From: Podarcis melisellensis
Lineage: Eukaryota
Length of the DNA: 64,000 nucleotides
Assembly: GCA_964234715.1 (NCBI GenBank)
Contig: OZ174280.1
Reading direction: 5' to 3' (one strand)
The position numbers and the translations under genes are program-made. The stretch's first letter is position 1. Each line of letters opens with the position of its first letter. Shown piece after piece: positions 3,445 through 64,000 of the stretch. Under the pieces are notes generated by a model. The model did no database searches. It was not told the DNA's origin and saw only the letters and a program-made list of their open reading frames with translations.

Positions 3445-3614
3445 NNNNNNNNNNNNNNNNNNNNNNNNNNNNNNNNNNNNNNNNNNNNNNNNNNNNNNNN
3501 NNNNNNNNNNNNNNNNNNNNNNNNNNNNNNNNNNNNNNNNNNNNNNNNNNNNNNNNNNNNNNNNNNNNNNNNNNNNNNNNNNNNNNNNNNNNNNNNNNNN
3601 NNNNNNNNNNNNNN
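3445..3614. other. Assembly gap
   Basis: N run. Confidence 1.
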
Positions 3615-14862: not shown

Positions 14863-17800
14863 AACTTTATTTCTGTGATTCTAAGTTGGTTTAAAGTGTT
14901 TTTTGATATTGTGTTTTAATGTTGCAACCCGCCCTGGGACCTTAAGATGAAGGGCAGGTAATGAATAAATAATCAATAAACAAATAAACAAATAAACAAA
15001 TGCTAATCACACCAAGTATAATTTATATTTATTTATTTTGTTAGTTACCTAACACAGCAGACTGTCTTTAGGTGCCTTGCAGTTATGTTTGGTCCTCAGC
15101 TATCAAGTTAGGACATCTTGTGACAGACAGATACCTTATTTTTAAAGAGCCCTCTTTCTTGCAGCTGATGGGAAAGACCATGATTCTGCAATGCAATCTT
15201 CATACAAATATAAATCTAGTAGTTACATATATAAGGAGATATAATGTAATGCAATATAATATAATATAATATAATATAATATAATATAATATAATATAAT
15301 ATAATATAATATAAGTTTGATTTTCTCTGCTATTTCAGAGGAGCAGCACATTTATGTTGCATTTGAGTTAATGGTTCACTGTTTGATTTGTTTTGCTTTC
15401 ATTTCTTCATTTCTCTTAGAAAATTGGCAACAGGTATGAAGTTTTAATCACCAGATAAGTAGAATGTATAATGTGTAAAGTTGGTCATGTTGTAATGAAT
15501 GATAATTCCTTTTCTCTCCATTTGAGTGTAGAAATGATGGGTATCCGTGCATTTTTCTCTTCTCGTATTTCCACTTCCATTTGCTAAAGAAAAACCTGTT
15601 TCCATAGAGAGTTTAGGTGCACAATCAGACCTCCATTTATTTAACTCCCATTGATTTCAAGGAGAAAGAGCTGAGAGCAGAAATCAATATGACACAAAGC
15701 ACCCAATTTTGGTTGGATACAAAATACAATCACATTTGGAAAGCCACTGTGCTCTTGCTGTTTTCTCTCTTCCCCATTATGCCTTTGCCTTATCTTAGTC
15801 GTAGCATTTTCTTTGCCTACTTGAATTTCTCATGCACATAAGTTGCCCCATGCTCTTGATAGTCTTCTTTGTTCATCCAAAAGCCACTGAAAGAGCTGAG
15901 TGAGGCCACCAAAGAGCCCCCAAGCCATGCTGCCTTGCCTCTTGCTGGGGAAGCCAGGATTTTTATAGGGTGCCCCCTGCCATGAAGCAAGGCATGCAGT
16001 TCCTTGCACATCCTCTCTGGAAAGCCAGGAAACAATGAGGAGCCTCCTGATAATACAACATTATGCATGAGCTCTCCTTGAAACTCAGCTGGAAACTTCT
16101 GCAAACTTTGGAAAGCCAAGATATGAAGTCCCGGGGAGTTCTGGCTCAACAGATGTGGCCTGAAGAGTGGCTCTGGGCAGCAAATACGTTCTTTGTCTAA
16201 CATTAACAAGTGCCCATCAGGGATCTGAACGCTCACAGGGTCCTGGCAAGCCTTGCCTTGAAGATCCCTTTCATAGTCCATGGACACATAGCAGTACTGT
16301 TTTGTAAGCCGGGCCACCATCTTTTTATCCAAGGACCCAAGAAGCTGTGGGTCATTGGAACTCTCCAGCAGCAGGGCATGCATGTGCTTGCAGAGAGCCC
16401 TCCCAGCCACGTCTAGTCGGTAGGTGCCTTCCATCCAGGTTTGCCCAGAGTGGATCGGAGTGACATGAGAAACCCCCGCCCCTGCCTCCACGCTCAGTCC
16501 AGTGACTCTACCACAGGCGCAGAGAGAGAGGAATCCTGTGTTGGCCACATGTAAAGCTGGGACACCAAAGCTCTCAAAAAACACTTCTGCCATCTTCTCT
16601 CTGTTTGTAGTAGGGCAGGAGGGAGAGTCACTCATCAGCATAGGATGGTCCTCAACAGGCACTCTCAATCCACAGTAGAAGAGATGGCTCCACAGATTCT
16701 CCATAGCCTCCCAGTCCACTATGATGCCATGCCTAACTGGATGGTCTGGGGATCTTCTGAAGCTGCCTTTGGCATGGACATTACAGGAGATAGATAGATG
16801 TTTATCCTGAGTCATCCCTGGATCGGTGGGAGGCAAGTATGTTGTCTTCATGGAAATCCTTGGCCTTTCCTCTCCTGCAAAGCCTGATCGAATGAAGGCA
16901 CTGCCATTGTCTACCACAATCGCAACTTTCCCCATAGTGTTGCACCTTTCCTCATGCCCTCTTCTGACTTTGCGGAAGTGGAATTATGTTGGCAGAATTG
17001 GAGAGAGATAAAAGCTCTTGTCACCCTGCCAAAAAACCAAAGCATAAGTAAAGAAGGAATGAGGCTGTGAATTCCCTTGGTAGTCAACTGCTGAAGTGAA
17101 AGTAGGATTCCTGTTGAGCATCAGAGTCAGGATATCTGAACAATCTCACAACACAATTGTTGCTTACAAGAGTAAGCCCCTTTGGGATCCCTTTTGGTTG
17201 CAGCACTATAGTCCATAGCAATCAGATAAAACATGGAGCTGCAATACACCAAGGTTTTGTGTTTCTTCATGGACTCAAAATAAATAACAAGTGACGTGAC
17301 CATCATGACCCCTATGGTGTATTGGTGTTTTTGTTAGTGCCCTGAACCGTTAATACTGCATAGACAAGACTGAACAGATGCTAAGGACTTACATAGTGCT
17401 TGTATGTGCACTCAGTAGTAGAAACACAACCTGGTTTGCATGTGACACTAAGCCATGGTTTATAAACCCTGATTTAACTTAAGCACAGTTAAGCCTGATT
17501 GTCCATACCTGCACCTCAGCTTAACTTTGGTTTATGTATTAACCAAGGTTTGCAGCTGGTTTATAAACCTTGGTTTATGTTAACCATGGCTTAGCTTAAT
17601 ATGGGATGCATTCCAAAGGACATGGTATTGTGTCGACTTCAGAATTCACAGTTTATTACAGAACCCCAAGTGTGCTTGCATAGGAAAGTGTTGTGGAAAT
17701 AAAGACATTGTTATAATAAGATACTGAGATAAAGCCTGTTTCCTGTTCATTGAATATTCATCCTGATATGTTTGTGTGGAGGTTAAATGTCACTAGCAAC

Positions 17801-40300: not shown

Positions 40301-42761
40301 TTGGAAAATGCATTAAGTAATTGGAAATGTATTAGTAACTGCCTGTATTTTACTTCCAAATACTGGAAAAAAACAAAAGCATTCATCATTGAAACAGTGA
40401 GAAAGGAAGAGTCAGCAGATTAAGTTACTGAATTAATGAACATACAGTAATAATAATAAAAAAAAACTTTGGGAAGGTATTAGCATTAATCAATTATCTT
40501 CGTGGGAAAGTTGGCACAATTTCATTGTTTGCTGGAATTGGCTGTGTGATGGCAGTTCTTCAAGGTAGGATATGGTCTGAAGAAGCATGAGACTATGACC
40601 TTGCTGGGTCTGAAACTATAGGATAACCAAAACACAGCCATTTTTCAGAAGTTACATTTATACAAAATTTTCTCTGTAGTTCTCCAACCAAATAATGTCT
40701 GGAGAAATGCATATATTTGTGGGAAAGCATGCATAGAAATGAATATGTTGGTGAAAATAACAGGTAGTTGCTAGCAAAAATGTGTACATTAGCCAAAACT
40801 GCACACAAAAAATGTTTATTAGCAGAAAGGCACACCTAAAATGCTGAAGCATTTTAGTGAGATTATTCAAAAAATGAAATTTGCAAAAAGCTGCAGAAAT
40901 GCGGAGAACCGAATCTAAGATTGGAAAAATGAGAAACTGGGAGATCTGAAATCAACAAATCCTTTGATCCCCAATCACCAGCATCCTCCAAAACATTAAA
41001 CCAATTTATGTGTGCCATGACCTCATCACAGTCACCCACCCACATTCCACATCCTTGGTAGCTCCCAATGTTTCGAAGGAAACTTGACACAGGGCTACTA
41101 TTTTTGACAGCAAGTATAACACCCAGTTCCACTCAGAAGTGGTTCTGTGAACAGGTCCTATTTAGTAGAGTTTGAGGCTAGTATCAATTCTTGTGAGTGA
41201 AGAATATCAGCATGTCCAGCAATTTCATTAAAGTCAAGGTGACGTGGAAGGTCACAGCATCAGATAAAAAATTCAATGTCTGCTAGTCTGCCGAATGCAG
41301 GCTGTGCAAAAAATGGGGCCGTCACAACACGCCAAATGATCCTTTGAATAGCACTGGCAGTTCTTAAACATCCTTGTGAAGATGGTTCAAGAGCTAGGCT
41401 GGCTGTGAATCCTGGGGTCAGAGACTATACACTGTCTGACATGTAGCGATAACATTTTCCCTCATGGCCTGTCTTCTTTTCCTGTAGTGTGTCTGCCCAC
41501 AAACTGTCGAGCGATGCCTGCTTCATCCTCTATGAGTTTTGGCAAGATGTGGCTTCATGGAGAAGGTTGGTGGCTCCTGACAATTCATGCAGTATTTGCG
41601 GGGAGATGGAGTGGCGGGGGGAGGCCTCAGAGCGGATGTCCAGTTAGCATGGGTCAGTACTCAGGGATGATGGGAGTTGTAGTTCAGCAACATCTGAAAG
41701 GCACCACATTGGCTACTCCTAATCTCAGAAGTCACCCATAGAAGAAGTTCCATAAGACTTGCCTCTTNNNNNNNNNNNNNNNNNNNNNNNNNNNNNNNNN
41801 NNNNNNNNNNNNNNNNNNNNNNNNNNNNNNNNNNNNNNNNNNNNNNNNNNNNNNNNNNNNNNNNNNNNNNNNNNNNNNNNNNNNNNNNNNNNNNNNNNNN
41901 NNNNNNNNNNNNNNNNNNNNNNNNNNNNNNNNNNNNNNNNNNNNNNNNNNNNNNNNNNNNNNNNNNNNNCCATTTCTTTGCAGCCACCTGCAATCAAACT
42001 ACAGTAAGAAGTTTCAGCGTGCCATCATTGACTTATTGGACTCTCCAGAACTTTTGACCACCATGCTCTTTCCAGGTTGAGTACTGATTGATGTAGATTT
42101 GCAATTTTGCCTCTAATTTTGCTTTTATTGCTTTTTTAAAAAAAGTGCATCAGACCTAGAGATGAGAAGGCCTGGAAAAAACCGGAAAAATGGGGAGGGG
42201 ACCAGTTTTTCCCCTTTTTCTCCAAACTTAAATAACGGCTTTGGAAAAGGGAGAAAAACTGGTTATTTCCCCAATTTTTCCGGGTTTTTTTTTCCAGGCC
42301 TTCCTATCTCTAATCAGACCTCTTAACATTACATCAGAAACAAGTCACATAGTGTGTCTCGATTCTGATCTAAATTTTATTTGGCATTTCAGAGCTGTGT
42401 TCCATACTTTATGTTCCTTGGAATAAGTTGTAGTTATTCTTGCAAAAGAAATACTTAAAAATTATTAGACTAAATTGTAGCCCAGTCTGTCCGTTTGAGC
42501 AGGGCTGGTCCAAGCCATTTTGGCACCAAAATAGTGCCTTGCCCTCTGCACCAGGAAAGAAGGGGTGGGGGGTGATCTATATCAGGAACAAATGTGGGTG
42601 GGAAAGAAAGATGGACATGGGGTTCTCCTGCCCCAGTGGACCCTGCTGCCTAAGGCGGTCACCTCACCATGCCTCATGGGTGGGCCGGTCCTGCATTTGA
42701 GTTTTGTGAACCCCTTGTTTTTGTTTCCTCAGCTTGCTGGTGGATCATGAACAATAACTGA
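8189..42761 (+). CDS. NECAB3: N-terminal EF-hand calcium-binding protein 3, 5'-partial; join(8189..8214,8755..8852,31038..31174,32537..32658,34615..34694,37142..37198,39790..39902,41488..41565,41984..42075,42733..42761)
   Basis: Ten AG/GT-bounded exons join in frame: [69 protein letters not shown]...[17 protein letters not shown]...HILVAQRQ...LYEFWQD...[20 protein letters not shown] homology region plus C-terminal ABM domain. The WWIMNNN end and nested ACTL10 identify paralog 3. Earlier exons not found in the window. Confidence 0.95.
8412..8607 (+). mobile_element. tRNA(Ala)-like SINE (Squam2-like); related degenerate copies near 320-490(-), 11968-12130, 20090-20190, 36127-36325
   Basis: gtagctcagcagtggagcatc..gggttcaatcc..gctgctgccagtc..gtagacaatactgagctagatgg..cagcttcctgtgttcct. 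Confidence 0.75.
8755..8852 (+). CDS. NECAB3: NECAB3 exon, 98 nt ([10 protein letters not shown]...AMDKTKL)
   Basis: ctgtag|AG TAT...AAA CTG|gtaggt; phase 1 to 0. Confidence 0.95.
13153..13878 (-). mobile_element. 5'-truncated L2-clade LINE (RT C-terminus) with (AAT)n tail
   Basis: [55 protein letters not shown] are L2 ORF2 motifs; (TTA)n at 13153-13196. Confidence 0.92.
14808..14860. repeat. (GT)n microsatellite
   Basis: Seen directly. Confidence 0.95.
15252..15313. repeat. (AATAT)n microsatellite
   Basis: Seen directly. Confidence 0.95.
15817..16935 (-). CDS. ACTL10: Actin-like protein 10, intronless, 372 aa, nested antisense in a NECAB3 intron
   Basis: Actin fold: [83 protein letters not shown] matches recalled ACTL10 (GLAVEAGAGVCHATPI). 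Position inside NECAB3 matches human ACTL10. Confidence 0.92.
   Translation of the reverse strand: MGKVAIVVDNGSAFIRSGFAGEERPRISMKTTYLPPTDPGMTQDKHLSISCNVHAKGSFRRSPDHPVRHGIIVDWEAMENLWSHLFYCGLRVPVEDHPMLMSDSPSCPTTNREKMAEVFFESFGVPALHVANTGFLSLCACGRVTGLSVEAGAGVSHVTPIHSGQTWMEGTYRLDVAGRALCKHMHALLLESSNDPQLLGSLDKKMVARLTKQYCYVSMDYERDLQGKACQDPVSVQIPDGHLLMLDKERICCPEPLFRPHLLSQNSPGLHILAFQSLQKFPAEFQGELMHNVVLSGGSSLFPGFPERMCKELHALLHGRGHPIKILASPARGKAAWLGGSLVASLSSFSGFWMNKEDYQEHGATYVHEKFK
17437..17600. repeat. Palindromic MITE-like repeat upstream of ACTL10
   Basis: taagccatggttt ... aaccatggcttag inverted ends and repeated ggtttat motifs. Confidence 0.5.
21339..21344 (-). terminator. Polyadenylation signal of C20orf144-like gene
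   Basis: AATAAA on minus strand (tttatt on +) 60 nt past TGA. Confidence 0.55.
21404..21751 (-). CDS. C20orf144: C20orf144-like coding exon 2 (115 aa + stop)
   Basis: 3' part of ORF 21404..21916 after the acceptor ttctgttttgcttacag. Confidence 0.82.
   Translation of the reverse strand, partial: VKVVLLPPLGKLSHGSKVLPLFTLPLGSRVNFCGRQEPRGYRGDSPSSPSLPFPSAARRGGGDGDHQLRKILTMFFLVEAEKTGLNADGDSTVAKNKTKNWYTIHPVGMRGPPGL
21404..25166 (-). CDS. C20orf144: C20orf144 (Bclt)-like protein, 153 aa; complement(join(21404..21751,25053..25166))
   Basis: Exon 1 [38 protein letters not shown]|gtaagt joins in phase 0 to ttgcttacag|[11 protein letters not shown]...GSRVNF...[21 protein letters not shown]...PPGL*. 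Collinear with recalled human MGNYSSHKRTK..PADMDK../TRIVLILPLDK..GQRIDY..RGAGEGSE. Syntenic position. AATAAA 60 nt after the stop. Confidence 0.82.
22586..22985. mobile_element. hAT (Charlie-like) non-autonomous element with internal tandem repeats
   Basis: CAGGGGT..ACCCCTG ends; exact 8-bp TSD cactagtg. Confidence 0.88.
24009..24088. mobile_element. 80-bp hairpin mariner-type MITE
   Basis: cagggtgagtcctttaaaagaggcccc ... ggggcctcttttaaaagactcaccctg in a TA-rich context. Confidence 0.8.
25053..25166 (-). CDS. C20orf144: C20orf144-like coding exon 1 (38 codons; an extra in-frame ATG at 25169)
   Basis: ggcATG ATG GGG AAT AAC ATC TCC CAC...TCC ACT|gtaagt; too short for the ORF track. Confidence 0.8.
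27079..27418 (-). mobile_element. Sauria SINE (Squam1/POM type)
   Basis: Reverse complement of the GGGACGCGGGTGGCGCTGTGG head and ACCTTT tail; 12-bp TSD tctagtgattgt. Confidence 0.9.
27510..27637 (-). mobile_element. tRNA-Lys(CTT)-headed SINE with CR1-type tail
   Basis: ctcagttggtagagcatgagactcttaatctcagggtcttgggttcaagccccac followed by ctgcattgcagggggttgg..cccttccaac..ttctatgattcta. Confidence 0.8.
27779..28009. mobile_element. Tc1/mariner-type MITE
   Basis: ta|cagtggtacctc...gaggtaccactg|ta. Confidence 0.88.
29820..29955 (+). mobile_element. CR1 LINE 3' fragment
   Basis: gggggttggactagatgacccttggggtcccttccaactctatgattctatg. Confidence 0.75.
31038..31174 (+). CDS. NECAB3: NECAB3 exon, 137 nt ([20 protein letters not shown]...AGRER)
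   Basis: ctccag|GTA...GAA AG|gtacaa; [15 protein letters not shown] signature. Confidence 0.96.
31219..31383 (-). mobile_element. hAT MITE, CAGTGGCGTAGC family
   Basis: Terminal inverted repeats; degenerate TSD aaagtcac/aaaggcgc. Confidence 0.85.
31456..31541. repeat. (CCTT)n microsatellite
   Basis: Seen directly. Confidence 0.95.
32537..32658 (+). CDS. NECAB3: NECAB3 exon, 122 nt (KDVTKSE...RCGRRAQK...MLTT)
   Basis: tttcag|G AAG...ACA G|gtactg; phase 2 to 1. Confidence 0.9.
34318..34378. repeat. (GA)n microsatellite
   Basis: Seen directly. Confidence 0.95.
34615..34694 (+). CDS. NECAB3: NECAB3 exon, 80 nt ([10 protein letters not shown]...QLIDKLECK)
   Basis: catccag|GT GTT...TGT AAG|gtgggc. 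Confidence 0.93.
37142..37198 (+). CDS. NECAB3: NECAB3 exon, 57 nt ([19 protein letters not shown])
   Basis: actcag|AGT...TCT|gtaagt. Confidence 0.92.
37478..37736. mobile_element. pogo/Tc2-type MITE
   Basis: TA TSD, TIR ccgtatttttcgctctataagac / gtcttatagagcaaaaaatacag, internal palindrome near 37565-37640. Confidence 0.85.
37969..38330 (+). mobile_element. Sauria SINE, CpG-rich divergent subfamily
   Basis: gggacgcaggtggcgctgtgggtt...(acctttacct) tail; ttaaag on both sides. Confidence 0.9.
38783..39258 (+). mobile_element. tRNA-derived CORE-like SINE (Squam3-like) with (CTT)n tail, interrupted by a hAT MITE
   Basis: A/B boxes tggtgtagtgg and gggttca, gctgggtgaccttgggc core, ttcttc tail. 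Confidence 0.75.
39002..39211 (+). mobile_element. hAT MITE, CAGTGGCGTAGC family, nested in a SINE
   Basis: 17-bp TIR cagtggcgtagcgtggg; TSD aaagacgg/aaaggtgg. Confidence 0.88.
39790..39902 (+). CDS. NECAB3: NECAB3 exon, 113 nt ([11 protein letters not shown]...QSSCLH)
   Basis: ctgcag|CAC...CTA CA|gtaagt; start of ABM domain. Confidence 0.95.
41488..41565 (+). CDS. NECAB3: NECAB3 exon, 78 nt (VSAHKL...[12 protein letters not shown])
   Basis: ctgtag|T GTG...AGA AG|gttggt. Confidence 0.95.
41768..41969. other. Assembly gap
   Basis: N run. Confidence 1.
41984..42075 (+). CDS. NECAB3: NECAB3 exon, 92 nt ([12 protein letters not shown]...TTMLFP)
   Basis: ttgcag|C CAC...CCA G|gttgag; the acceptor lies just after an N gap. 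Confidence 0.95.
42157..42312. mobile_element. Palindromic hAT MITE
   Basis: tagagatgagaaggcctggaaaa..ttttccaggccttcctatctcta; exact TSD atcagacc. Confidence 0.85.
42733..42761 (+). CDS. NECAB3: NECAB3 last coding exon (ACWWIMNNN*)
   Basis: cctcag|CT TGC TGG TGG ATC ATG AAC AAT AAC TGA. Confidence 0.95.
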
Positions 42762-45957: not shown

Positions 45958-46090
45958 NNNNNNNNNNNNNNNNNNNNNNNNNNNNNNNNNNNNNNNNNNN
46001 NNNNNNNNNNNNNNNNNNNNNNNNNNNNNNNNNNNNNNNNNNNNNNNNNNNNNNNNNNNNNNNNNNNNNNNNNNNNNNNNNNNNNNNNNN
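45958..46090. other. Assembly gap
   Basis: N run. Confidence 1.
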
Positions 46091-49265: not shown

Positions 49266-49617
49266 GGTAAAGTAAAGGTAAAGGGACCCCTGACCATTAG
49301 GTTCAGTCGTGGCCGACTCTGGGGTTGCAGCGCTCATCTCGCTTTATTGGCTGAGGGAGCCGGCGTACCGCTTCCGGGTCATGTGGCCAGCATGACTAAG
49401 CCGCTTCTGGCGAACCAGAGCAGCGCACGGAAACGCCGTTTACCTTCCCGCCGGAGCGGTACCTATTTATCTACTTGCACTTTGATGTGCTTTCGAACTG
49501 CTAGGTTGGCAGGAGCAGGGACAGAGCAAGGGGAGCTCACTCGGTCGCTGGGATTCGAACCGCCGACCTTCTGATCAGCAAGTCCTAGGCTCTGTGGTTT
49601 AACCCACAGTGCCACCC
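49266..49617 (-). mobile_element. Sauria SINE inserted in an older tRNA-SINE
   Basis: aaaggtaaagggacccctgacc...cagtgccacc; flanks resemble Squam2-like sequence. Confidence 0.88.
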
Positions 49618-51269
49618 TGGTCTGAAACTGGCAGTTAGGGCAGAGTCTACATTCCACTGAAGCTGCTTGCCTACTCCAGCCCCCATTGCTTAGGGTGTAT
49701 TTGTTTGTGTGCTGTGTATGCTCCATGAGATCATGTGCACACAAGCATGCGCACACACTAGTACGCAGCCATTGGAAGGGTGGCAAACTTTCATTGTTTC
49801 CAGAGCACAATATTGAGCTAGATGGGCCAGTGATCTGGCTCAGTATGAAGCAGCTTCGTATGTTCCTGTGTAAACCGGTAGTATGGAGTCTTTGAGCCCA
49901 AATATACCAAAAATATTGCATTAAATATATTTTCAAGCATCTTGCTTTCTTATTTGGGGTTTGTAACATAAAGACACCACCCTCCCCTGCATAATTTTGG
50001 CATCAGGTGAAGGATGCTTGAAATAGTCTCCATATGGCAGCCTTAATGTTTTGAAGAGTTTCCTGGGTGGAAACACCTGTATTTGGTGGACGTTCCACAT
50101 GGCACCACTGGGCATTTTTAGTCATGGTGGCCAATGGGGTTACTGAAAGTCAGGGTGATCCACATGGCAAACTGCTCTACATTTTGCAGTGATCATATGG
50201 AGCAGCTGCCATGCAGAGACAACTTCAAGCAGTCCCACATGGCAGCTTTAACTGACTGCCTTTGCTCTGTAATGTCCAGAAACAATTTTATCCACTTGCC
50301 TATTACTCTTCAACAACCACTGTCCTCTTGAGGCTGAGTTTGCAAATCATAACACTATCCCAAAGAGGTGGCTCTATTGCTTTGTGACTGACTGCACTTT
50401 ACTTGTCCTGTTGTGCTAAAGATATGTGGGGAGAGGCACCTTTAGAGATGGCAGGATTTATATACAGACTACTGAACTTACAAAACTGTGCCCCCTCGAT
50501 TGGCACTGGAATAGAATACATGGGTTGCCCTTCCCTCACAATATATCAGTTGTTCTACGAATTATCAATGTAGTTGTTTGCAATGGGCCCTCATCTGAGG
50601 GCTATCCCCCCCCCCCACCACGCAAAAGACCTACTATCTGTTTTGTGGTCTAGTCCTAAGATGGGCAGAAAATCAATGGCTGTTACGTTAACATCAATCA
50701 CCTGTCTTGTTTTACCAGGCTTGTTGCTAACATTCATGCAACCGTTCTTCCTCAGATAAGGTTGATTCTTGAACCTTTAATGTACTGTTCAGGGTCAAGG
50801 GAAGGACTGTCCACCAGTCACAGAGTTTTAACACCCGCCACTATTTCTGCAGCACTCCTTTTATCAGTCAGAGAAAGGGATCTGGTGGTGGTGGTGTTTT
50901 CTTTTGCAAGGGAAATCAAAACAGGCCACATTTCCAATTGTGAAATTGCTGCAACAAGCCCCATCTGCTTTCACAAACTGACAAGAGACCTAAAGATAGA
51001 GAGCATCTGTGATTTCTCATAGGTGATTTTATGCAAACAAGGCATGTAGAAACTCAGATTTGGTCCATAATTTTGTAGATGCAGCAGGAGTCACTAGTTC
51101 TGCTTCCAATCACTGTCACTTTACACCAGTAAGCACAATTTCACCCCATCCCCAGGACTCATTTATGCCACTGCTACAGCTGGACTAACCAATGAGAATT
51201 AAGCTGCAATCCTAATCTCACTTACATGGGACGAAGCCCTATATAAATCAATGAGACTTGCTTCTGGGT

Positions 51270-53882: not shown

Positions 53883-53888
53883 TTTATT
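53883..53888 (-). terminator. Polyadenylation signal of BPIFB-like gene
   Basis: AATAAA on minus strand about 185 nt after the stop. Confidence 0.55.
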
Positions 53889-54071: not shown

Positions 54072-54095
54072 TCACATTGAAATCACTAGGCCATC
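54072..54095 (-). CDS. BPIFB-like last coding exon (DGLVISM*)
   Basis: ctcttcttag|GAT GGC CTA GTG ATT TCA ATG TGA. Confidence 0.85.
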   Translation of the reverse strand, partial: DGLVISM

Positions 54096-56816
54096 CTAAG
54101 AAGAGAGAAGTTATAGGTGTTTAAATTATTCCTTTGAGATACCAGTCTTTATTCCAATAACAGATGGAAGTACCCAGCCCAGCACACAACCTTAAGGAGG
54201 AAACAGATGAGGAAACACAGGCAACTCCACTCAGTGGGAGCCGCCCAATGGTACGGTCCCATGGGCATTCCCAACCTAAGGACATAGCTCTTTTGCCTCC
54301 CTCCAACTCACAGGTTGAATCCCCAATAACATCCCACCCCATCCCTTCTTTTCTACATTGTAGAAGTGCAGAATTGGTTGAGGACCCTTTGAGTCAGAAC
54401 AGCTAGCTCCTCAATGCAGACCTTGCCAACCTACCTAAGGCCTCAGGTGGGCCTAGCTCTTTCCTAAGACAGCACCTTTCAGAGCTTAGCCAGCAGGATT
54501 AGTGGATGCTGCTCTTTGCCTGACCTTGTTTTCGTGCTCCCACTTCCCTTGGAAATCCAAGCAGGACAAATACAATATACATGGGGAACCAAATAATTGG
54601 ATCTAAATAAGAAAATAGGTCTCCTTCCTCCACAGTGTCCATCTTGCATGCCAAAGGTGGTGCTAGAAGGATGGCAGCCTTCCATTGCTGGGCATTTGCT
54701 ATAAGGTTCTGTGTCTTTGCTGTACCTGGAAAAGGGCGGTGTTGACTTTGGTCCACTTGACATTTAGCATGGAAGGCAAGGTAATTCCTCTCCTGAGCAT
54801 GCCTAGAACAGAGAACAGCCAATGGACCTGCCTTCATGGTCATTAGTTAGCTGAGCAGCCCCTCATGAAATGTTAGCTCCTGTTCCCGCAGCTGAAGCCC
54901 TCCATTTTCTGTGAAACAGCTGCCTGGCTTACCATTCATGGCTGGTAGGAAGCTGTTTGTATGAAGGTTGTTGATGTACTCATGGAGCTTCTGGGCCTGG
55001 AATATAGGACATTCTTTCAGGAGAATCATAGGCAGGCCTGAGCCCCACATTTAGTACACATATTAAATCCATATATATCCACCACATGTACTATAAGTCT
55101 TTTTTAAAGGATTGGGCTGTCTTTTAAGGACTATAATAAAAGTGGATTCAAGTGATCTATTGAAATCCATGCACAGACAGCTTCATCAGGAAGCTTTTCA
55201 CATAATCCATTAATCACCCATTTGCCTGGTGGCTAGGGTGTATTCAGCCTTCATTCTCTGATGTCAAACCACAAAGCTGTACCTAAGCCAGGTAGATAAG
55301 TTTGTGCAGAATGCGCGGAACAAGAAGACATGTAAGCAAAGATACACTTGGAGTAGAGAGAGCTTTACCTCCTCCTTGAGTATCTGGCTATAAAACATGC
55401 AGTCAATATCCTCAATTCTCTTGGATCAGGTTGTGGATTGAAGGCTCATGCTATACAGCACACCCTATTGTTTCATGAAAAATAGATTGATTTGCCTGTG
55501 GCATATTTCAGGCCTTGAAGAGAAGACTTACATTGGTAGAGCCAACAGATGAGGATGCCTGAACACCATCAAAGCTACAGGGAAAGAAAGCAATCAGATT
55601 AGGGGGTGGGATGCAAGCCATGACTCCAGTGGCATAGCGTGGGTTGTCAGCACCCGGGGCAAGGCAAGTAATTTGCGCCCCCTAACCCGTGGATTTGCAC
55701 CCCCTAACCCGTGGATTTGCGCCCCCTAACCCTAACCCCCAGATGTTGCGCCCGGTGCGGCCAGCCCCCCCTGCACCCCCACGCTACGCCACTGCATGAC
55801 TCTCTACAGCAGTGGTTTTCAACCAGTGTGCCATGGTTGTATTCCTTATTTCTACTAGCTGCTCACAATCTCTCACTACTACCTGAAAACAAATCCAGTA
55901 AGAAAAATACCCATACCTCTTTTGTGACAAAGAGATCAACAGTTTGCCATTAGAAGCTGAGAGCTTTGCATTGAAGATGATGACCTGCAACAACAACAAA
56001 AATATGTATCATTGCAAATGGCTGGACTGGCACAGCCTCAATTACAGTCTTTACTGTTTAAAAAAAAATGTGTTGTGGCATCTTAAGGGCTAACATTTAT
56101 TATGGCACCACAGACTAGCGTCTACTTCATCATATGTAAACCTAATACCATAATATATGTATTAAATTGTGGAACCTAGACTAGCACAGCAAATGCTACA
56201 TTACGAAGAGTTTCCTGACAGTAAGAGCTGTTCGACAGTGGAATTTGCTGCCAAGGAGTGTGGTGGAGTCTCCTTCTTTGGAGGCCTTTAAGCAGAGGCT
56301 TGACAACCATATGTCAGGAGTGCTCTGATGGTGTTTCCTGCTTGGCAGGGGGTTGGACTCGATGGCCCTTGTGGTCTCTTCCAACTCTATGATTCTATTC
56401 TATGATTCTACATCTCTAGAAAGTCTTAGCTTTGTTGTTATTGCTGTTCTGTTTGTTGTAGATCACATAACAAGTTTGTGCCGGGGGGGGGGGAGAGAGA
56501 AACTGCTGGGAGTTGCATGTATACATGCATGGATTATAGCACACCCCTTTTCTATTTCTTTCTTCTTATTTGTAAAAGACACTGTTAATTTACTCTGGCC
56601 GCATAGGGAACATCATTCATTTCTACATATATCAAGTGACATACAACACAAGACCATCCTATTATGAATGAACTGTTTCAAAGAGATAAACAATTATATG
56701 ACTTTCCGAAGATATCTGAAGGCAGCCCTGTATCATGAAGTTTTAATGCCTGATATTTCATTATGTTTTTTATTTTCTGTTGGAAGCCACCCAGATTGGG
56801 TGGGGTATAAGTAATA

Positions 56817-56868
<52 letters not shown>

Positions 56869-59800
56869 TTCTATTCTGTTCAACAGGAATTGGCCATTGC
56901 TTTGTCAGTGAAAATCTGGCTAGGATACTCTGACAAGTTTGCATTTACTGTATGGGGGCATGTATATGAATCTTGCGTGTATAAGTGAGGTTTAGTTGAG
57001 GTGAACCTGGCCATCAGAAGAATATAATTAGTGTACCGTGGCCAATGTGCTGTGCAATTCATGTTTTTTTCTGCATTTTGTAAAGTTTATTTAAGAACAT
57101 AAGAAGAGCCTGATGGAATGGATCAATGGCTCATCAAGTCCAACATCCTGTTCTCACAGTGGCCAACCAGATGCCATGTGGTATTTATTGGTTTACACTG
57201 CTCCTGGAATCTTTTGGTCAGAGATTGGGAACCTGTGGCTCTCCAGTTGCTGTTTGACTCCCAACTCTCATCAGCATGGCCAATAGACAGAGGTTGTTGG
57301 AGTTGTGGCCAGTCAACATCTGAAAGGCCCAGGTTCCTATCTCTGCTTTTGATGAAGGGGAGAAATTTTTTTAGATAAATAAATAAAATGGAGGTCATGC
57401 AGGTGTTTTGCTTCAATACTCACAACTTCCCACTGCAGGACCGACTGACCATGTACAAACACATCAGAGAAAAGAGGCTGTTTCACCACAACACTCTGGC
57501 TGTCTATGGAAATGAGTGGAAAATTTGAGCCCCTTATCTTTACCACCAAAGGTTGTGGAGCAGGGAAGCGCTCAGAAATCTGCAAGAGAAGGCAAGGTGT
57601 CATGAGCTTCTGGTATCTGTGTGTGGCTGCCACTTCTACAGACCTTCGTTCCCATTAGGACAAGACACAATTTCCAGGGCTATTATCCTAAAGGATGGTC
57701 TCATGAGACAATGAGATTTAGAATGCAGACACTGTGTTCAGGTTCTGCTACCAAAAGAGCTTTTAATGCAAATATATATTCAGCAGATTCCAAGCTTAAT
57801 AAGCATATAAGATTCTAATACTTAGGCGAGCATAGCAGTGCATCTAGGCAGCTAATTAGTTAGACTTTGTATGCAACAACAGTGATTGCCTGCTGACTCT
57901 ATTCATGCAAATTTGTATGAAGCACTTATTTTTTAAGCAAGCAAACTTTGGGTTGAATGGCTTAGTTATGTCCTGTGCTGCGTAAGCGGGCAATCCTATG
58001 CATGTCTTCTCAGAAGAAAGCCTCACTGAGTTCAGTGGAGCTTTCTGTCATGGGACTGCAGCCTTAATGACTCACGGTATATCTTTAAAAGATGCACACA
58101 TATAAGGAGAAGATCAAGTGCTTGGTTTGAATGGCCTATTGCCAGAGGAGCATAAAAAGAAAACACACTAACCTTTGTAATTGCACTTGCCAAGTCAGTT
58201 GTCATGAGTTGTTTCTGTTGATAAAGGGAATAGTAAAGTGAATCAGCTTTGGAAATCTCTAATTAATTTCTGAAACACTCATTCAGGGCTAGCAGGCCAA
58301 TAGGAGAAAACATAAAGGCCACCCACCAACAGCAGCTTGGGCCCACTCTTCCCTACTCCCATGTTAGAACCATTCACTCTGTCTCTCTTCCTCTCTCCTT
58401 TCATGTTGCCTTACTCTGCATACAAAAAGGGCTTACGTAGGTAGTTGGAACCAAATAACTCCAATATGAGCTAACACACCACTTTGGAGGCGGGATGGGA
58501 AACAGCAGAAGGGACACTGTGTTGCCTTGCTTTACAGCAGGGACAAGGAACCCTGACAAGAGAGTTTGGCTTCTGTGTTGTGCTGTGTGAAAAGGACTTC
58601 ATTTCTTGCAGGGCAGCACAGAAAAGCTCCCACCTCCCCTTACTCTCTGTTTCTCCTCTCTCCCAGCCCCTTGCATTGGTCTGTCTTCCGCCTCTTGGGC
58701 CTTGATCTTTCTGCTTCCTCCTGCTGCTTAACCCCCCCCCCCTCTCTCTCTCCTGTCTCCAAGAGACCCAACCCTTAACCTTTTTCTCCCCCACCTAACC
58801 TCTAGCCTCATCTTTTCTTTACCTGTTCCACTGCTTCAATTCTGAGTGTTTTCTCTCTGTGCAAGCATCTCTTCCTATTGGGACCTCTGGCTCCACTTAA
58901 CACTGGCTCTACCTGCTGTTAGTTGCCTTGCCCTCTGCTCTGTCATTTGCCCCACTGGCTTCAGTGGTCATCAGCTGCTGTCTGTGTCCAAGCACAATTT
59001 GTTTTGGGGGTTTGTTTTGTTTTGCCTGATTGTCATGGGTTCTAGGAATCCATTGTCGAGGAGACTTGCTGGAACAATCAGGATTTTCCTACTTCATACA
59101 TTTTTTGATAAGCCTGGCACTAAACCTCATCCACAAAGCATAGGGAGAAGCAATCTCCCTCTCTCAAACAAGATGAAAGGTGTGTGCAAAGGCAAGGAGA
59201 AGGAGAAGCATCTGATTATGAAAGATGAGGGCAGGAATAAGGGACATTGCAAGACATATGTTCAAAGTGACCACAGAAACAATATTACTTCCTTAACAAG
59301 ACAGTCCGTTTCAGAGGGAGAAGTCAGGAAGCAGAAAGCTAATTAGGGGCAATCAGTGATAGGACAGGGGATGAGGAGCAAACCATTTCCATTCATCATG
59401 TTATTTTTAGAGAAAGTGTGCTTGAAAATGTTCTGGTGAAATTACAATAGAAGGAAGGAGATGCACAGCCAATTATGCATCCTCTAAATTGAGGATGACC
59501 TTTTATGTTCTATGAGGCTACACTGTTCTAGAAATAGAAGCAATCCTCAAAACCAGGAAATGTCCAGTCATCTTGCCCTAAATCTATCAAGGATAACCTT
59601 GGAACAGTCCTCTATAGCAGGGGAGCTGGTGGTCCTCCAGATGTTGTTGCACTCCAGCTCCTATCAGCCCCATCCAGCATGGCCAACCGTCAAGGACGAT
59701 GGGCAATATAGCCCAGCAACATCTGGAGGATCATAGGTCCCCCACCTCTACTATAATATAGATTTTGTAGCTACTGTTCCATTGTTTGGGTGGTTGCTTG

Positions 59801-62800
59801 CTGTAGTTTCATATCTCCCTGAAGCTTTTCTTAGTGTTAGCTGTAAGCTTTGCATGAGGCTTTTAAATGATGGAGGAAGAACATCTTCAAGGCAATTGCT
59901 GGAAACAAGATTGTAATGAAAGTATTTCTCTGGTGCAAACTGGGTTCATTAGCAGAAATTAGCAGTAAAATGCTGGTGAATTTCCAGAAAGCATATATGT
60001 GTATATATATGCTGCAAATAGCTGCAGAAATGTCATAAAGTGAATTTGACTGGAAAAATGAGAAATCAAGAGAAACCAAAAATGACACATTCAACCATTC
60101 CTACCTAGCTCTACACAAGTGCAAATAATGGAGATGGGCTTGCACATTTTTCTCTTGGGCAACAGCTTAATCTACAGGAAATTAGCTGTTAAATAGTTAT
60201 CTCTAGGTTGATAAAAGCTTTGCCTAGTGTTTCTGTACAACGACTAAGCTACTGTTAAAAGCACAGCCACAGAGGCCAGTGAAAAAAATATCAACCCTTG
60301 GTAAAGAACAGATTCTAGAATGGAAAGGGGCGCTTTTCATGAGAAAGTCAATGGATCCATCAGAGGATGGGGGAGGGGCATAAGAGAGGTAAAGGGAGAA
60401 AGGGGAACAAGAACATAAGAGACTTGCTGGCTGATCAGAGCAAATCCTCTTTTCTACAGCAGCCAAACAGATGCCCACAAGCAAGATATGAATCCATCTC
60501 CTGTTGTTGCTCCCCATACTGCTCCTAAAATATGGAATCACCAGTGTGGGGAGTGGAGTTGCAAGGGCTCACAGGTGCACATGTATGGCTAAGAGTAGAT
60601 CATTTTGGCAACATATCATCTACAGCCACAAAATGTATAGCACTAACACTGTGTCATATAGAAGCACGGAAACCCAAAATTTATGGTCACTTTACCCCTG
60701 CTCCTTTGGTAAGGTTGGCACTGCAGCCTCCAGTCAGGGCAGCAATCCCAATGCTGATGAAATCCTTGCTCAGAGTCAAGTGGAAGTTAGTGCCAGACTG
60801 TGGAGTCGCTTGGAAAAGTGTGGTGCTGGGTGGACTTCCCGGCAGAGAAACCTGAAATGTAGCCTGGTGGGAGATCCAAGGGGGAAATGCAGGACATCTT
60901 TGTTAATCCTTTAAAGAGAGTATGTCAGCCTTAAGGCTGCTATTTCTCCTTCCCAGCTGTTTGCAGGAACTCTCCTTGCTGTTTTGAGAATCTTGTATTT
61001 CAAAAACCCAGTTTATCCCCTTATCCACAATCAACCACTGCGCTCTGCAAAAGAGGGTATCCTGCAGATAACTTCAGGATTCTGCAGGAATAAGAACTTC
61101 AGCATGCTGGTTTCCCCTCCTGTTACATATTAGACAGACCCCATCTGTTATCATTTGGGGACCTACTGAAGACCTTCCTCTTTTGGAAAGACTTTTAAGT
61201 GGAGATCTTGTCCCAATCCCCATCTGTATTGGAACTATTTTTAAACTATTTTTACACGTGGAATTATCTTTAAATGTTTTAAGTTCACAACTGTTTCATT
61301 TTTGTTTTGATTGTATATTTTATTGCTTTATCCCACCCTGGGATCTTGTGGAGACGGATGGGTAAGGAAAATACAGAACTACAGAAATAAAACCAACGCT
61401 CTAACTCTCAGTCGGGACGCGGGTGGCGCTGTGGGTTAAACCACAGAACCTAGGACTTGCCGATCAGAAGGTCGGCGGTTCGAATCCCCGCGACGGGGTG
61501 AGCTCCCGTTGCTCGGTCCCTGCTCCTCCCTAGCAGTTCGAAAGCATGTCAAAGTGCAAGTAGATAAATAGGTACCGCTCTGGTGGGAAGGTCAACGGCG
61601 TTTCCATGCGCTGCTCTGGTTCTCCAGAAGCGGCTTAGTCATGCTGGCCACATGACCCGGAAGCTGTATGCCATCTCCCTTGGCCACTAAAGCGAGATGA
61701 GCACCGCAACCCCCGAGTCGGTCACGACTGGACCTAATGGTCAGGGATCCCTTTGCCTTTAACCCTCAGTCAAGTTCTGTGCTCTTTAGTCCTACAGATG
61801 TCATTAGACTTAAGACCATGGACCCAGGTAGGGAGTTTTGCCTAAGGCTGGGCTGATTATCCTCTCACCTGATACACACACACATTCTCTCCCTCTCCCT
61901 CTTGTCTACCTTTCCCCTCAACCTACTAGTTTTCTTTGTGTTAGGAATTTCTGGTGTTGGGTCATGCAATTCCGCTCCTCCCACATATCCTGAAATGGTA
62001 CCTTCCCAAGAGAGCTGTGTCATGTGCTTCTTCTTATAAAGGCAGATCTTGTGGAATAAAACAGGAACAGCAGCAGAAAGCCATACCACAACTACATCTA
62101 CGCCTGACTTCCATTGCCACAATCACAAGGCAAGAAAAGAGGTTATAGATATGGGGATTAGTCAGAATTTCATAAGGCAACCTGTTCTCCAAAGCCAAGA
62201 ATAATACTTGCCTGATAAGGAATCAGGAAATACCTATCGTTTACTTTAGGGGAACCTATTAGATCATAATGGATGGTCCCAAATGTTCCAACAGGAACTG
62301 CAGCTGCAAGAGAAATACAAAGAGATTGTTGAATCACGTGCAAAACCCATGAAAGAGCATGTGGCTATTGCGACCTGAGCCACCTCTTTTGTGCTGCTCT
62401 TTTACGATATATATGATATCTTTATAATTGTAAGGTTAAAACAGACTTGAAAAGTACATTCAGTTCAACCATTTGCCTCGAGCCTTAGAAATAGGGCAGG
62501 CTATCAGACAAGGGCAATTGTTGCTTATGATGCTCAATGAGTCAATTGGCAGTAATTCCTGGGACCAGATAGGTGTCCCTGAATACAGATCACTTCCATT
62601 GATGGATTGACTTAATAAAACCATGGAGAATCACTGTGAGATAACCATACCTAATTTAGGGCATAGAACACTTGGATAGTTACCAGCTGATTTCTTATCT
62701 TCTGTTTCCGAACAAAGTTATTTGTTAGCCTCTGCTAGGCTGTTCCACAAAGTCTCCCCAGCAGAAGCAAAGGTGGTTGGAAAAAGAGGATGTCATCAGC

Positions 62801-63897
62801 AACTTACAAGCCAGTGTACTCAGAAGTGACACATTAAGGATGTCAGCCACCAGTCGGATGCAGTGACGGATCTGTAAAACAAAGTGAATGCAGAGCACAC
62901 AATAAAAAAATTCCTTCTAATAGCACCTTAGAGACCAACTAAGTTTGTTATTGGTATGAGCTTTTGTGTGCATGCACACTTCTTCAGATACCAGAGCACA
63001 CAGTAAAGAATCAAACACACAAAGTCAGGAAGAGAATAATTTGGAATGGAAAGGACTGTTACCAAGTCCTCCTGAAACAAGGTGCTGAGAGACTTCTTTA
63101 AGAATCATGTAAAATGCATATTTTGGTATAGAACTACACAATGAATTAGCTAACCTAGGAATTTCTTCTGGAATTTCTGAATTTCACTCAGATCAGGGCT
63201 GAATACCTGCAGACACTTCTAGGCCGTAGCGATTTTTGGGTGGGATTCAATCACATACCAGCAAATCCAGGTTGCACAATCATAGCTGAACAGGAGGTTT
63301 TGCACAACAACCCCACTTCCCCCCAAACACTGGACTTTTTGCAAGAAGGAAAGTGATGGGGAAATGCAATGGAAAATGGGAGATAACACTTGCTTTGACA
63401 CAGCATTGTCTAGCCTCCCCACAAACAAATAGCAACAAACGCTCCTTAAATAGTCAAGGTCATCTAATCTCCCTGCAGACAAATTAGGATACAAATGTCC
63501 TATGTGTTTGCGACACAGAAATTTCTGTGTGTATCCTGTAATAGTAAACCCAAATGTCCCCAGATAGAGAAAATGTGGTGCTGGAGAACTTTGTCAACTT
63601 TACTCCACTGTGAGTTGCATGCTCTTCATAGGGAAGAAACTCTTGTGGTTCACGTGAACCTGCATAATTCACATTTCTCAAACCAATATGCAAATTTAAG
63701 GACAGCTAATTTACACCAAATTTCATGATGCAGTTCTCCAACAAAAAATTGGGTACAAAGATACCTTATTTCAGGGGAAATTGAGCACAAAAACATATAT
63801 ATTCGTGAAACCAATGTACATAGTTGCCCAGCTTACCACATCAATCAAAATTGTCCAGACCACAGATTGCATGTTGTTCTCATCTGGTCCATCCACA
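54072..63897 (-). CDS. BPI fold-containing family B (LPLUNC/BPIFB-like) protein, 5'-partial; complement(join(54072..54095,54726..54802,54933..54996,55532..55574,55917..55984,57424..57579,58173..58214,60696..60863,62212..62303,62808..62871,63837..63897))
   Basis: Eleven exons (61,64,92,168,42,156,68,43,64,77,24 nt) join in frame without stops (about 285 aa). The 92-..-68-43-64-77 size and phase series and motifs PVGTFGTIHYDL, ISERFPAPQPLVVKIR, SSSVG, FLPAMN, GITLPSMLNV, DGLVISM* follow the BPIFB gene architecture. Paralog cannot be assigned. Confidence 0.9.
54726..54802 (-). CDS. BPIFB-like exon, 77 nt (GMLRRGITLPSMLNVKWTKVNTALFQ)
   Basis: tgttctag|GC ATG...TTC CAG|gtacag; phase 1 to 0. Confidence 0.9.
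54933..54996 (-). CDS. BPIFB-like exon, 64 nt (AQKLHEYINNLHTNSFLPAMN)
   Basis: attccag|GCC...AAT G|gtaagc; phase 0 to 1. Confidence 0.9.
55532..55574 (-). CDS. BPIFB-like exon, 43 nt (FDGVQASSSVGSTN)
   Basis: ccctgtag|C TTT...AAT|gtaagt; phase 2 to 0. Confidence 0.9.
55627..55794 (+). mobile_element. hAT MITE, CAGTGGCGTAGC family
   Basis: Terminal inverted repeats; exact TSD catgactc. Confidence 0.9.
55917..55984 (-). CDS. BPIFB-like exon, 68 nt (VIIFNAKLSASNGKLLISLSQK)
   Basis: gttgcag|GTC...AAG AG|gtatgg; phase 0 to 2. Confidence 0.9.
56196..56410 (+). mobile_element. CR1 LINE 3' fragment
   Basis: ttcctgacagtaagagctgttcgacagtggaa...ttccaactctatgattctattctatgattcta CR1 terminus. Confidence 0.85.
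56818..56868. repeat. (TTA)n microsatellite (likely L2 tail)
   Basis: Seen directly; preceded by L2-like 3' sequence from about 56700. Confidence 0.9.
57424..57579 (-). CDS. BPIFB-like exon, 156 nt (ISERFPAPQPLVVKIR...QWEV)
   Basis: ctcttgcag|ATT...GAA GTT|gtgagt. Confidence 0.9.
58173..58214 (-). CDS. BPIFB-like exon, 42 nt (KQLMTTDLASAITK)
   Basis: ttatcaacag|AAA...ACA AAG|gttagt; resembles the PLTT..L..LIPK exon. Confidence 0.75.
60696..60863 (-). CDS. BPIFB-like exon, 168 nt (ATFQVSLPG...LTLSKDFISIG...TKGAG)
   Basis: cccaccag|GCT...GCA GGG|gtaaag; an in-frame alternative acceptor lies 12 nt further in. Confidence 0.8.
61414..61759 (+). mobile_element. Sauria SINE
   Basis: Full length; TSD taactctcagtc/taaccctcagtc. 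Confidence 0.92.
62212..62303 (-). CDS. BPIFB-like exon, 92 nt, GC donor (AVPVGTFGTIHYDLIGSP...IPYQ)
   Basis: ctcttgcag|CT GCA...TAT CAG|gcaagt. Confidence 0.85.
62808..62871 (-). CDS. BPIFB-like exon, 64 nt (IRHCIRLVADILNVSLLSTLA)
   Basis: ttttacag|ATC...GCT T|gtaagt; phase 0 to 1. Confidence 0.82.
63837..63897 (-). CDS. BPIFB-like exon, 61 nt (VDGPDENNMQSVVWTILIDV)
   Basis: ttgctcag|T GTG...GAT GTG|gtaagc; phase 2 to 0. Confidence 0.75.
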
Positions 63898-64000
63898 CTG
63901 AGCAAAAGGAATTATTGACATCACTGATTATAAGGATCAATTATAAGCATGTAGAAATTTCAGTATTCCTATTGCTTTGCAATTCTTATCTCACATTCTA

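Follow-up and report, generated by a model that had tools for sequence, protein, structure and literature searches.

The minus strand of a 64,000-nucleotide stretch of Podarcis melisellensis DNA (assembly GCA_964234715.1, contig OZ174280.1; the whole stretch is hereafter called the window) carries between positions 63897 and 54072 a chain of short exons, which a preliminary description took for a divergent BPI/LBP/PLUNC family gene. The locus raises the questions of whether such a chain is a real and working gene, which member of the family it represents and what its product may do. Our analysis makes it very probable that the window holds exons 6–16, the 3′ two-thirds, of an intact and transcribed BPIFB-type gene orthologous to the Podarcis protein A0A670KAY6, the product of which has lost a conserved disulfide and may serve as a lipid carrier, and in which one unusual splice donor is read through in some transcripts. 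Within this reading, the layout of the exons, their splicing and transcription, the family and the fold, and the occurrence of the gene in squamates and crocodilians are shown.

Exon structure and open frame

Eleven exons were rebuilt from the letters and numbered after the chicken genes in Table 3 of PMC3253384. Exons 6–15 measure 61, 64, 92, 168, 42, 156, 68, 43, 64 and 77 nucleotides (nt), and the coding end of exon 16 measures 24 nt (Table 1). Together they amount to 859 nt, in which the first base finishes a codon begun upstream and is followed by 285 codons and a TGA, with no internal stops. All 11 exons are preceded by a pyrimidine tract and AG. The donor is GT at nine of the exons and GC only at the 92-nt exon, where it has the form usual for such donors. 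No run of N falls in the gene region, the three of the window being located at 3445–3614, 41768–41969 and 45958–46090. The limits, the number and size range of exons and the product of about 285 residues given in the preliminary description are all reproduced by the rebuilt chain. Its remark that most of the exons are missing from or hidden among the open reading frames (ORFs) also holds, as each lies within a longer chance ORF except the 24-nt exon, which is missing from the ORF list.

A simple splice-site scan without a GC-donor option recovered six of the 11 directly and gave exon 11 a wrong donor on its upstream side; the rest were reached through homologs. An alternative exon 8 of 70 nt, ending at a GT 22 nt upstream (62234), was rejected, as it requires an extra unseen exon; the 92-nt form with the GC donor was adopted, being the one present in the orthologs and at the RNA joint.

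BLASTP aligns the 285 residues at 98.2% identity and without a gap to residues 228–512 of UniProt A0A670KAY6 (P0124; Podarcis, 512 amino acids). Ungapped identities of 97.5% and 98.7% were found to the P. lilfordi protein CAI5778052.1 (P0007) and to P. muralis XP_028587875.2, respectively. Identities of this order place the sequence in a Podarcis-like lacertid. Given the 98.2% ungapped identity to the Podarcis protein and the spliced contigs described below, the exon chain is no chance frame. Exon 6, the first within the window, aligns with residues 166–187 of P0007, and residues 1–165 of that protein are unmatched in the window; the 5′ third of the gene, exons 1–5, therefore lies beyond base 64000, where the preliminary description had also placed the missing 5′ exons. 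Exon 7 encodes IRHCIRLVADILNVSLLSTLA, which contains the sole conserved cysteine of the squamate-crocodilian family, and exon 9 spans the inter-domain linker and the beginning of the C-terminal domain.

Splicing and transcription

Contigs from four public runs (X1–X4), belonging to one study and two samples and only guessed to be RNA, were compared with the window. They contain 6–8% of its sampled words, which is roughly the exonic share. Contig alignment covered positions 58001–64000, where the joints 63837/62871, 62808/62303, 62212/60863 and 60696/58214 are all carried by contigs. Exactly 63836–62872, 62807–62304 and 60695–58215 are omitted from the contigs, each being GT..AG on the minus strand. 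The joint between exons 8 and 9 has an ambiguity of 5 nt, in which the only recognised splice type is GC..AG. Exons 9 and 8 are found together in a contig of 425 nt (record 25 of X4), whose depth, 5.44, is also that seen at the joints to exons 7 and 6. The gene is spliced and transcribed; the contigs give neither strand nor expression level. The six junctions further downstream rest on splice sites and on ungapped identity to RefSeq and Ensembl models.

Beyond 63897 the contigs continue upstream for about 125 nt or more, so that the gene has more 5′ exons there. Compared with the window, exon 9 of the contigs shows two substitutions (60789 and 60807), both synonymous, and one in-frame insertion of 3 nt at 60828/60829, from which we conclude that the runs derive from another individual or a sister species.

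Table 1. Coordinates of the exons and of other features in the window. X1–X4 are the contig sets and P numbers denote related proteins; a slash inside a sequence marks the splice point.
Feature	Position	Strand	Evidence and remarks
Exon 6, 61 nt	63837..63897	-	acceptor ...ttttgctcag/, donor /gtaagc; joint 63837/62871 in X1, X2, X4
Exon 7, 64 nt	62808..62871	-	splice sites; joints 63837/62871 and 62808/62303 in contigs; 21/21 residues identical to P0007
Exon 8, 92 nt (canonical size)	62212..62303	-	GC donor CAG/GCAAGT; joint to 60863 in X3, X4
Exon 9, 168 nt (canonical 174-213)	60696..60863	-	splice sites; contig joints on both sides; P0003 match, E 2e-21
Exon 10, 42 nt (canonical 51-60, TENP 42)	58173..58214	-	splice sites; joint 60696/58214 in X2, X3; matches P0002, P0007, P0017
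Exon 11, 156 nt (canonical 165-171)	57424..57579	-	open frame and protein matches on its own
Exon 12, 68 nt (canonical)	55917..55984	-	splice sites, ortholog alignment
Exon 13, 43 nt (canonical)	55532..55574	-	splice sites, ortholog alignment
Exon 14, 64 nt (canonical)	54933..54996	-	splice sites, ortholog alignment
Exon 15, 77 nt (canonical)	54726..54802	-	splice sites; 26/26 residues identical to P0007
Exon 16, coding part, 24 nt, DGLVISM and TGA	54072..54095	-	same C-terminus in lacertid, snake, gecko and alligator orthologs
AATAAA, candidate polyadenylation signal	53883..53888	-	pattern search; 184 nt 3′ of the stop
GC-donor read-through, 13 codons ASIILGFGEQVAL, then TGA	62170..62211	-	X1 contig record 7, unspliced, 62303-62129
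Interspersed repeat of ~350 nt, possibly a SINE (short interspersed nuclear element), in the GC-AG intron, noncoding	61416..61761		inverted copy at 49273-49622, 90-91% alike

Family and fold

The evidence for family and fold is taken from the orthologs, because the joined window product was compared only with proteins found in the other searches; the joined product itself served for the frame check, BLASTP and one tree. Profile searching, which had been named earlier as a way of checking the assignment, gave a divided answer. The C-terminal domain LBP_BPI_CETP_C (PF02886) is recognised in residues 360–508 of P0124, a stretch encoded in the window, with 34.7 bits against a cut-off of 23, and scores 25–46 bits in other orthologs, while the N-terminal domain LBP_BPI_CETP (PF01273) stays below its cut-off.

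The structure predicted by AlphaFold2 for P0007 from a 56-row alignment has a mean predicted local distance difference test score (pLDDT) of 64.7 and a predicted template modelling score of 0.53, and displays a pattern of helix, long strands and long helix twice over. When this model was submitted to Foldseek, BPI (1bp1) came first (E 1e-14, 424 columns), followed by LBP and CETP, and the matches to these three proteins range from E 1e-14 to 9e-13 over 411–442 columns. VIA-align superposed the model on BPI with a Z score of 16.9, and its N-domain on mouse BPIFA1 with a Z score of 11.7 and a root-mean-square deviation of 3.3 Å over 167 residues. The alligator ortholog as modelled in the ESM Atlas lies nearest a BPIFB4 cluster (template modelling score 0.72), and a TENP cluster is among three tied Atlas feature matches (0.96), which is a lead only. 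The N-termini of P0124 and of the alligator protein P0122, outside the window, possess hydrophobic stretches which by their look resemble signal peptides. What the window itself encodes is the final helix of the N-terminal half-barrel together with the linker and the complete C-terminal half-barrel.

On the strength of domain profiles and modelling, the gene is classified as a predicted two-domain BPI-fold gene of the BPIFB/LPLUNC type. Both the assignment made in the preliminary description and its expectation for structure prediction are borne out, since PF02886 is found in the orthologs and the P0007 model, with its TULIP fold, matches BPI, LBP and CETP. The gene belongs to a known family, in which it is divergent but regular.

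Distribution and placement of the lineage

When exon 11 alone was searched against 1.84 billion representative proteins, five matches at E<=0.001 were obtained, the best with E 3.7e-12, and the three that were looked up (P0001–P0003) belong to a skink and two geckos. Word-index searches from the exon 11 proteins reach lacertids, snakes, geckos, a skink, two alligators and a gharial, and outside this family they reach one bird clade only. Among crocodilians, full-length orthologs are present in Alligator mississippiensis and A. sinensis and one matching fragment in Gavialis; the alligator protein P0122 (517 amino acids) can be aligned with Podarcis P0124 over the whole length, the two sharing 51.5% identity. 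Gene models already exist in P. muralis, P. lilfordi, P. raffonei, snakes and geckos, and novelty in the sense of an unseen gene is not supported. Annotation of these models is uneven. A0A670KAY6 is named by its domain only in UniProt, and NCBI labels the relatives "BPIFB4-like", "BPIFB3-like", "BPIFB2-like" or "uncharacterized", the Podarcis counterparts being "BPIFB4-like". The NCBI model of P. muralis covers the 3′ half of the gene only, and the gene is divided into two models in P. raffonei and also split in Heteronotia.

A tree was built from 21 rows, 13 of the squamate-crocodilian family and eight from birds, with redundant, fragmentary and mis-modelled rows left out. Squamates (97/96) and alligators (100/98) form sister groups. 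A distance of 2.2 changes per site divides them from the bird clade that includes chicken BPIFB3, compared with 0.56 separating alligators from squamates. Distances were relied upon because a three-group topology cannot show paralogy. Identity to the chicken protein P0113 is 24.3% for alligator P0122 and 22.6% for Podarcis P0124, values which are approximate in comparison with published figures since different aligners were used. Chicken OCX-36 shares 19–30% identity with its chicken paralogs and 32.8% with its platypus ortholog (PMC8144736, Supplementary Table 1), and both reptile values thus lie inside the paralog range and under the value for the ortholog. Because the distances are those of paralogs, a separate and old BPIFB lineage is thought likely; as judged from these sequences against the bird BPIFB3/OCX36 clade only, we think that it has been kept in squamates and crocodilians. 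The crocodilian orthologs are sister to all squamate members, and the gene therefore predates the split between squamates and archosaurs.

The exon plan was compared with that of the chicken paralogs in Table 3 of PMC3253384, where exons 6–15 measure 64, 61, 92, 177, 60, 168, 68, 43, 64 and 77 nt in BPI/LBP, 64, 64, 92, 174, 54, 168, 68, 43, 64 and 77 nt in OCX-36 and 46, 61, 92, 177, 42, 165, 68, 46, 64 and 77 nt in TENP, and exons 6–12 measure 61, 61, 92, 213, 54, 171 and 68 nt in LPLUNC4. Relative to the genes in that table, the sizes 92, 68, 43, 64 and 77 and all phases are canonical in the window, and the deviations from the canonical 16-exon BPI/PLUNC plan consist of whole codons only. 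The shortening of the 42- and 156-nt exons, pointed out earlier, is confirmed by the canonical ranges of 51–60 and 165–171 nt in the same table. No chicken gene listed there shares the full pattern of the window. Single sizes are shared: exon 7 (64 nt) with OCX-36, exon 6 (61 nt) with LPLUNC4 and exon 10 (42 nt) with TENP, the last being the sole TENP-like size singled out in the window. The hallmarks of BPIFB4 (LPLUNC4) in that survey are an early 63-nt exon (exon 3 in the text of the paper) and a long exon 9 of 213 nt in chicken; exons 9 and 7 of the window, at 168 and 64 nt, differ from the 213 and 61 nt of chicken LPLUNC4.

These sizes bear on the possibility of 1:1 orthology between the reptile gene and a BPIFB that already has a name, be it BPIFB4, chicken BPIFB3/OCX36, TENP/BPIFB2, BPIFB6 or BPIL3, in which case the lineage is not new. 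As judged from sequences of the bird BPIFB3/OCX36 clade and from the chicken exon sizes, we hold this to be unlikely. The names given by NCBI to the relatives and the individual exon sizes shared with OCX-36, LPLUNC4 and TENP point in its direction, as does the Atlas search, in which the alligator protein is nearest to the BPIFB4 cluster. In a profile search the only match outside the family was a protein of the bird OCX36/"BPIFB3" clade, at E 3e-6, and the "BPIFB4" or "BPIFB4-like" genes of alligator and turtle, which may or may not include P0122, are treated as OCX36 orthologs in PMC8144736. The NCBI naming is, however, inconsistent, and none of the exon patterns in the chicken table fits, exon 9 of LPLUNC4 measuring 213 nt as compared with 168 nt in the window. 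The alligator protein is no nearer to chicken P0113 than the Podarcis protein is, with both in the paralog range, and the bird clade is far more distant than alligators and squamates are from each other.

Integrity of the gene

The N-domain of the family is normally closed by a conserved disulfide, the cysteine pair of which is marked in Fig. 3 of PMC3253384. In our alignment A3 the first of these cysteines is Ser in 7/7 rows of the squamate-crocodilian family, as opposed to Cys in 43/44 bird rows. The second position is occupied by Ile, Leu or Asn, and the sole conserved Cys of the family lies six residues downstream, in exon 7. We treat the absence of the disulfide as a derived loss within the family and not as exclusion from BPI/LBP/PLUNC.

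The lost disulfide is one of several points that weigh against an intact, transcribed BPI-fold gene. The depth of the spliced contigs is low (2–6) and the RNA nature of the runs is guessed. The NCBI models of geckos and two Podarcis species are fragmentary and split at the GC-donor intron. Pfam searches of ten stop-free, exon-bearing stretches of the minus strand gave no BPI match; single exons are too short and divergent to be classified alone. PF01273 reached only 16 bits in P0007 against a cut-off of 28.8, most of this domain being outside the window, and nothing at E<=0.1 in P0124 and P0122. The family profile found no match at E<=1 among PDB sequences, from which it follows that the lineage is very divergent; together with an identity of about 23% to a chicken protein of the BPIFB3/OCX36 clade, this agrees with the strong divergence remarked upon in the preliminary description. 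Finally, the confidence of the structural model is moderate, as its pLDDT indicates, and the protein modelled is the P. lilfordi ortholog and not the window product.

Some of the same observations might be expected if the gene were still expressed but in decay, as a transcribed pseudogene or relic with a product that has ceased to function as a BPI-fold protein. In geckos, a skink and two Podarcis species the automated models are fragments, contig depth is low, the conserved disulfide is lost, the N-terminal Pfam domain is under threshold, some transcripts are cut short where the GC donor is read through, and there is a precedent in chicken, where the family pseudogene "P10" is expressed (PMC3253384). 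Decay is nevertheless very improbable in our judgement. Each of the 11 exons in the window keeps an open frame and intact splice sites, and the full-length lacertid and alligator orthologs of 512 and 517 amino acids still align from end to end at the identity given above. The differences that the RNA contigs show either are synonymous or preserve the reading frame, and both domains are predicted to adopt a BPI-like fold. The replacement Ser is fixed in 7/7 aligned members, and the loss of the disulfide is therefore old and tolerated. A squamate-specific paralog arising by recent duplication inside the BPIFB cluster, the idea of the preliminary description, might be read from the squamate origin of the three looked-up proteins among the five exon 11 matches and from the distance to bird BPIFBs, but is refuted by the full-length orthologs of A. 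sinensis and A. mississippiensis and the Gavialis fragment, which are sister to all squamate members, and is hardly credible.

The GC donor and a possible short form

In our reading of an intact two-domain gene, some transcripts fail to splice at the weak GC donor that follows exon 8, as in the X1 contig that continues unspliced from exon 8 to 62129; these would yield a product consisting of the N-domain only. The tail encoded by the read-through in the window (Table 1) is also the end of the NCBI model P0123 of P. raffonei, which closes with ...PYQASIILGFGEQVAL, equal to positions 62211–62170 of the window. A gecko model (P0012) ends with ...PYQASIILGFGF, the gecko tail being ASIILGFGF. The lacertid and gecko tails thus both start with ASIILGFG, eight identical residues in what is supposed to be an intron. 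This shared start hints at conservation across squamates, as far as comparison of these models can indicate, and eight shared residues in a supposed intron are notable given how old the split between the lineages is.

One may speculate that a single gene gives rise to both a long, BPIFB-like two-domain protein and a short, BPIFA-like N-domain-only protein through regulated use of the GC donor and, separately, that the gene is an old sauropsid BPIFB paralog without the disulfide which was lost in birds and mammals. We regard this extended proposal as rather doubtful. If true, it would mean that reptiles gain a "short PLUNC" by splicing where mammals do so by gene duplication.

Repeats and neighbouring sequence

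The interspersed repeat in the GC-AG intron is covered by thousands of RNA contigs with depths in the hundreds of thousands, and this pile-up marks it as a member of an abundant, transcribed family of repeats. A tRNA gene search on the repeat at 61.4–61.8 kb called no tRNA-like head. Contig depths of 12,000–47,000 were also seen at 62897–62992, in the intron just 5′ of exon 7, where another repeat fragment probably resides. The intron between exons 11 and 12 contains a perfect (TAT)17 microsatellite at 56817–56868. At 13275–14105 on the minus strand, a 277-codon open stretch resembles by eye the C-terminal part of the reverse transcriptase of a long interspersed nuclear element and is probably a retrotransposon remnant.

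The 3′ end of the BPIF gene faces the side of an intronless actin-family ORF of 388 codons (15820–16983, minus strand; Pfam Actin, 282 bits), which fits with an ACTL10 nested in NECAB3. On the human map the block of ACTL10 and C20orf144 (NECAB3) is followed by CBFA2T2, SNTA1 and CDK5RAP1 and then by the BPIF cluster; in the window the BPIF gene lies near that block. Four long plus-strand ORFs at 39–53 kb gave no Pfam match, and the 3′ end of NECAB3 was not located.

Proposed role and comparison with known systems

By analogy with BPI, LBP and the PLUNCs, the protein would be secreted and would hold a lipid or another hydrophobic ligand in an apolar pocket of each half-barrel. It may be a carrier or sensor in the secretion of an epithelium or gland; mucosal defence or vomeronasal ligand transport had been suggested as possible roles in the preliminary description. 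Such a role is favoured over cationic killing of bacteria because the N-terminal half is not strongly basic, its isoelectric point being 7.8 in Podarcis and 5.1 in the alligator.

The locus demonstrates that genes made of short exons can be read correctly from raw sequence. Published surveys describe the family in chicken (PMC3253384) and OCX36 in birds, turtle, alligator, platypus and frog, with no squamate included (PMC8144736), and our literature searches found no paper on squamate BPIF genes or on this lineage. The poorly resolved BPIF repertoire of the sauropsids gains a defined lineage in squamates and crocodilians which automated annotation names inconsistently. The loss of the disulfide, the GC-AG intron that splits annotation and the possible single-domain isoform are the notable traits of this lineage, and the general picture of the family is unchanged.

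Among the known systems, the Podarcis orthologs are the same gene, with identical exon joins including the GC-AG intron; they differ from the window by 5–7 residues, and the window is without exons 1–5. Human BPI (1bp1), LBP (4m4d) and CETP (2obd) share the TULIP architecture of two half-barrels, with Z scores from 16.9 to 10.6 over 340–394 residues. In contrast to this structural similarity, identity in the structural alignments is 10–17%, no hidden Markov model match is found at E<=1, and the lizard family lacks both the disulfide and a strongly basic N-terminal half. Chicken BPIFB3/ovocalyxin-36 and the bird "BPIFB3-like/BPIFB4-like" clade (P0113, P0018 and others), the sole group outside the family reached by sequence search, share the two-domain BPI fold, the exon sizes 92, 68, 43, 64 and 77 and the 64-nt exon 7. 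They differ from the lizard gene by an identity of 22–24% and a long branch, by exons 9–11 of 174, 54 and 168 nt as compared with 168, 42 and 156 nt, and by retention of both disulfide cysteines, the first of which is Ser in the lizard family. The short PLUNCs (BPIFA1/SPLUNC1, latherin and BSP30b) resemble the read-through form, in that the model N-domain superposes on BPIFA1 and the read-through form would be this domain alone. The BPIFA proteins are products of separate single-domain genes, known from mammals, whereas here a single-domain form would come from a long gene by leaving one intron unspliced.

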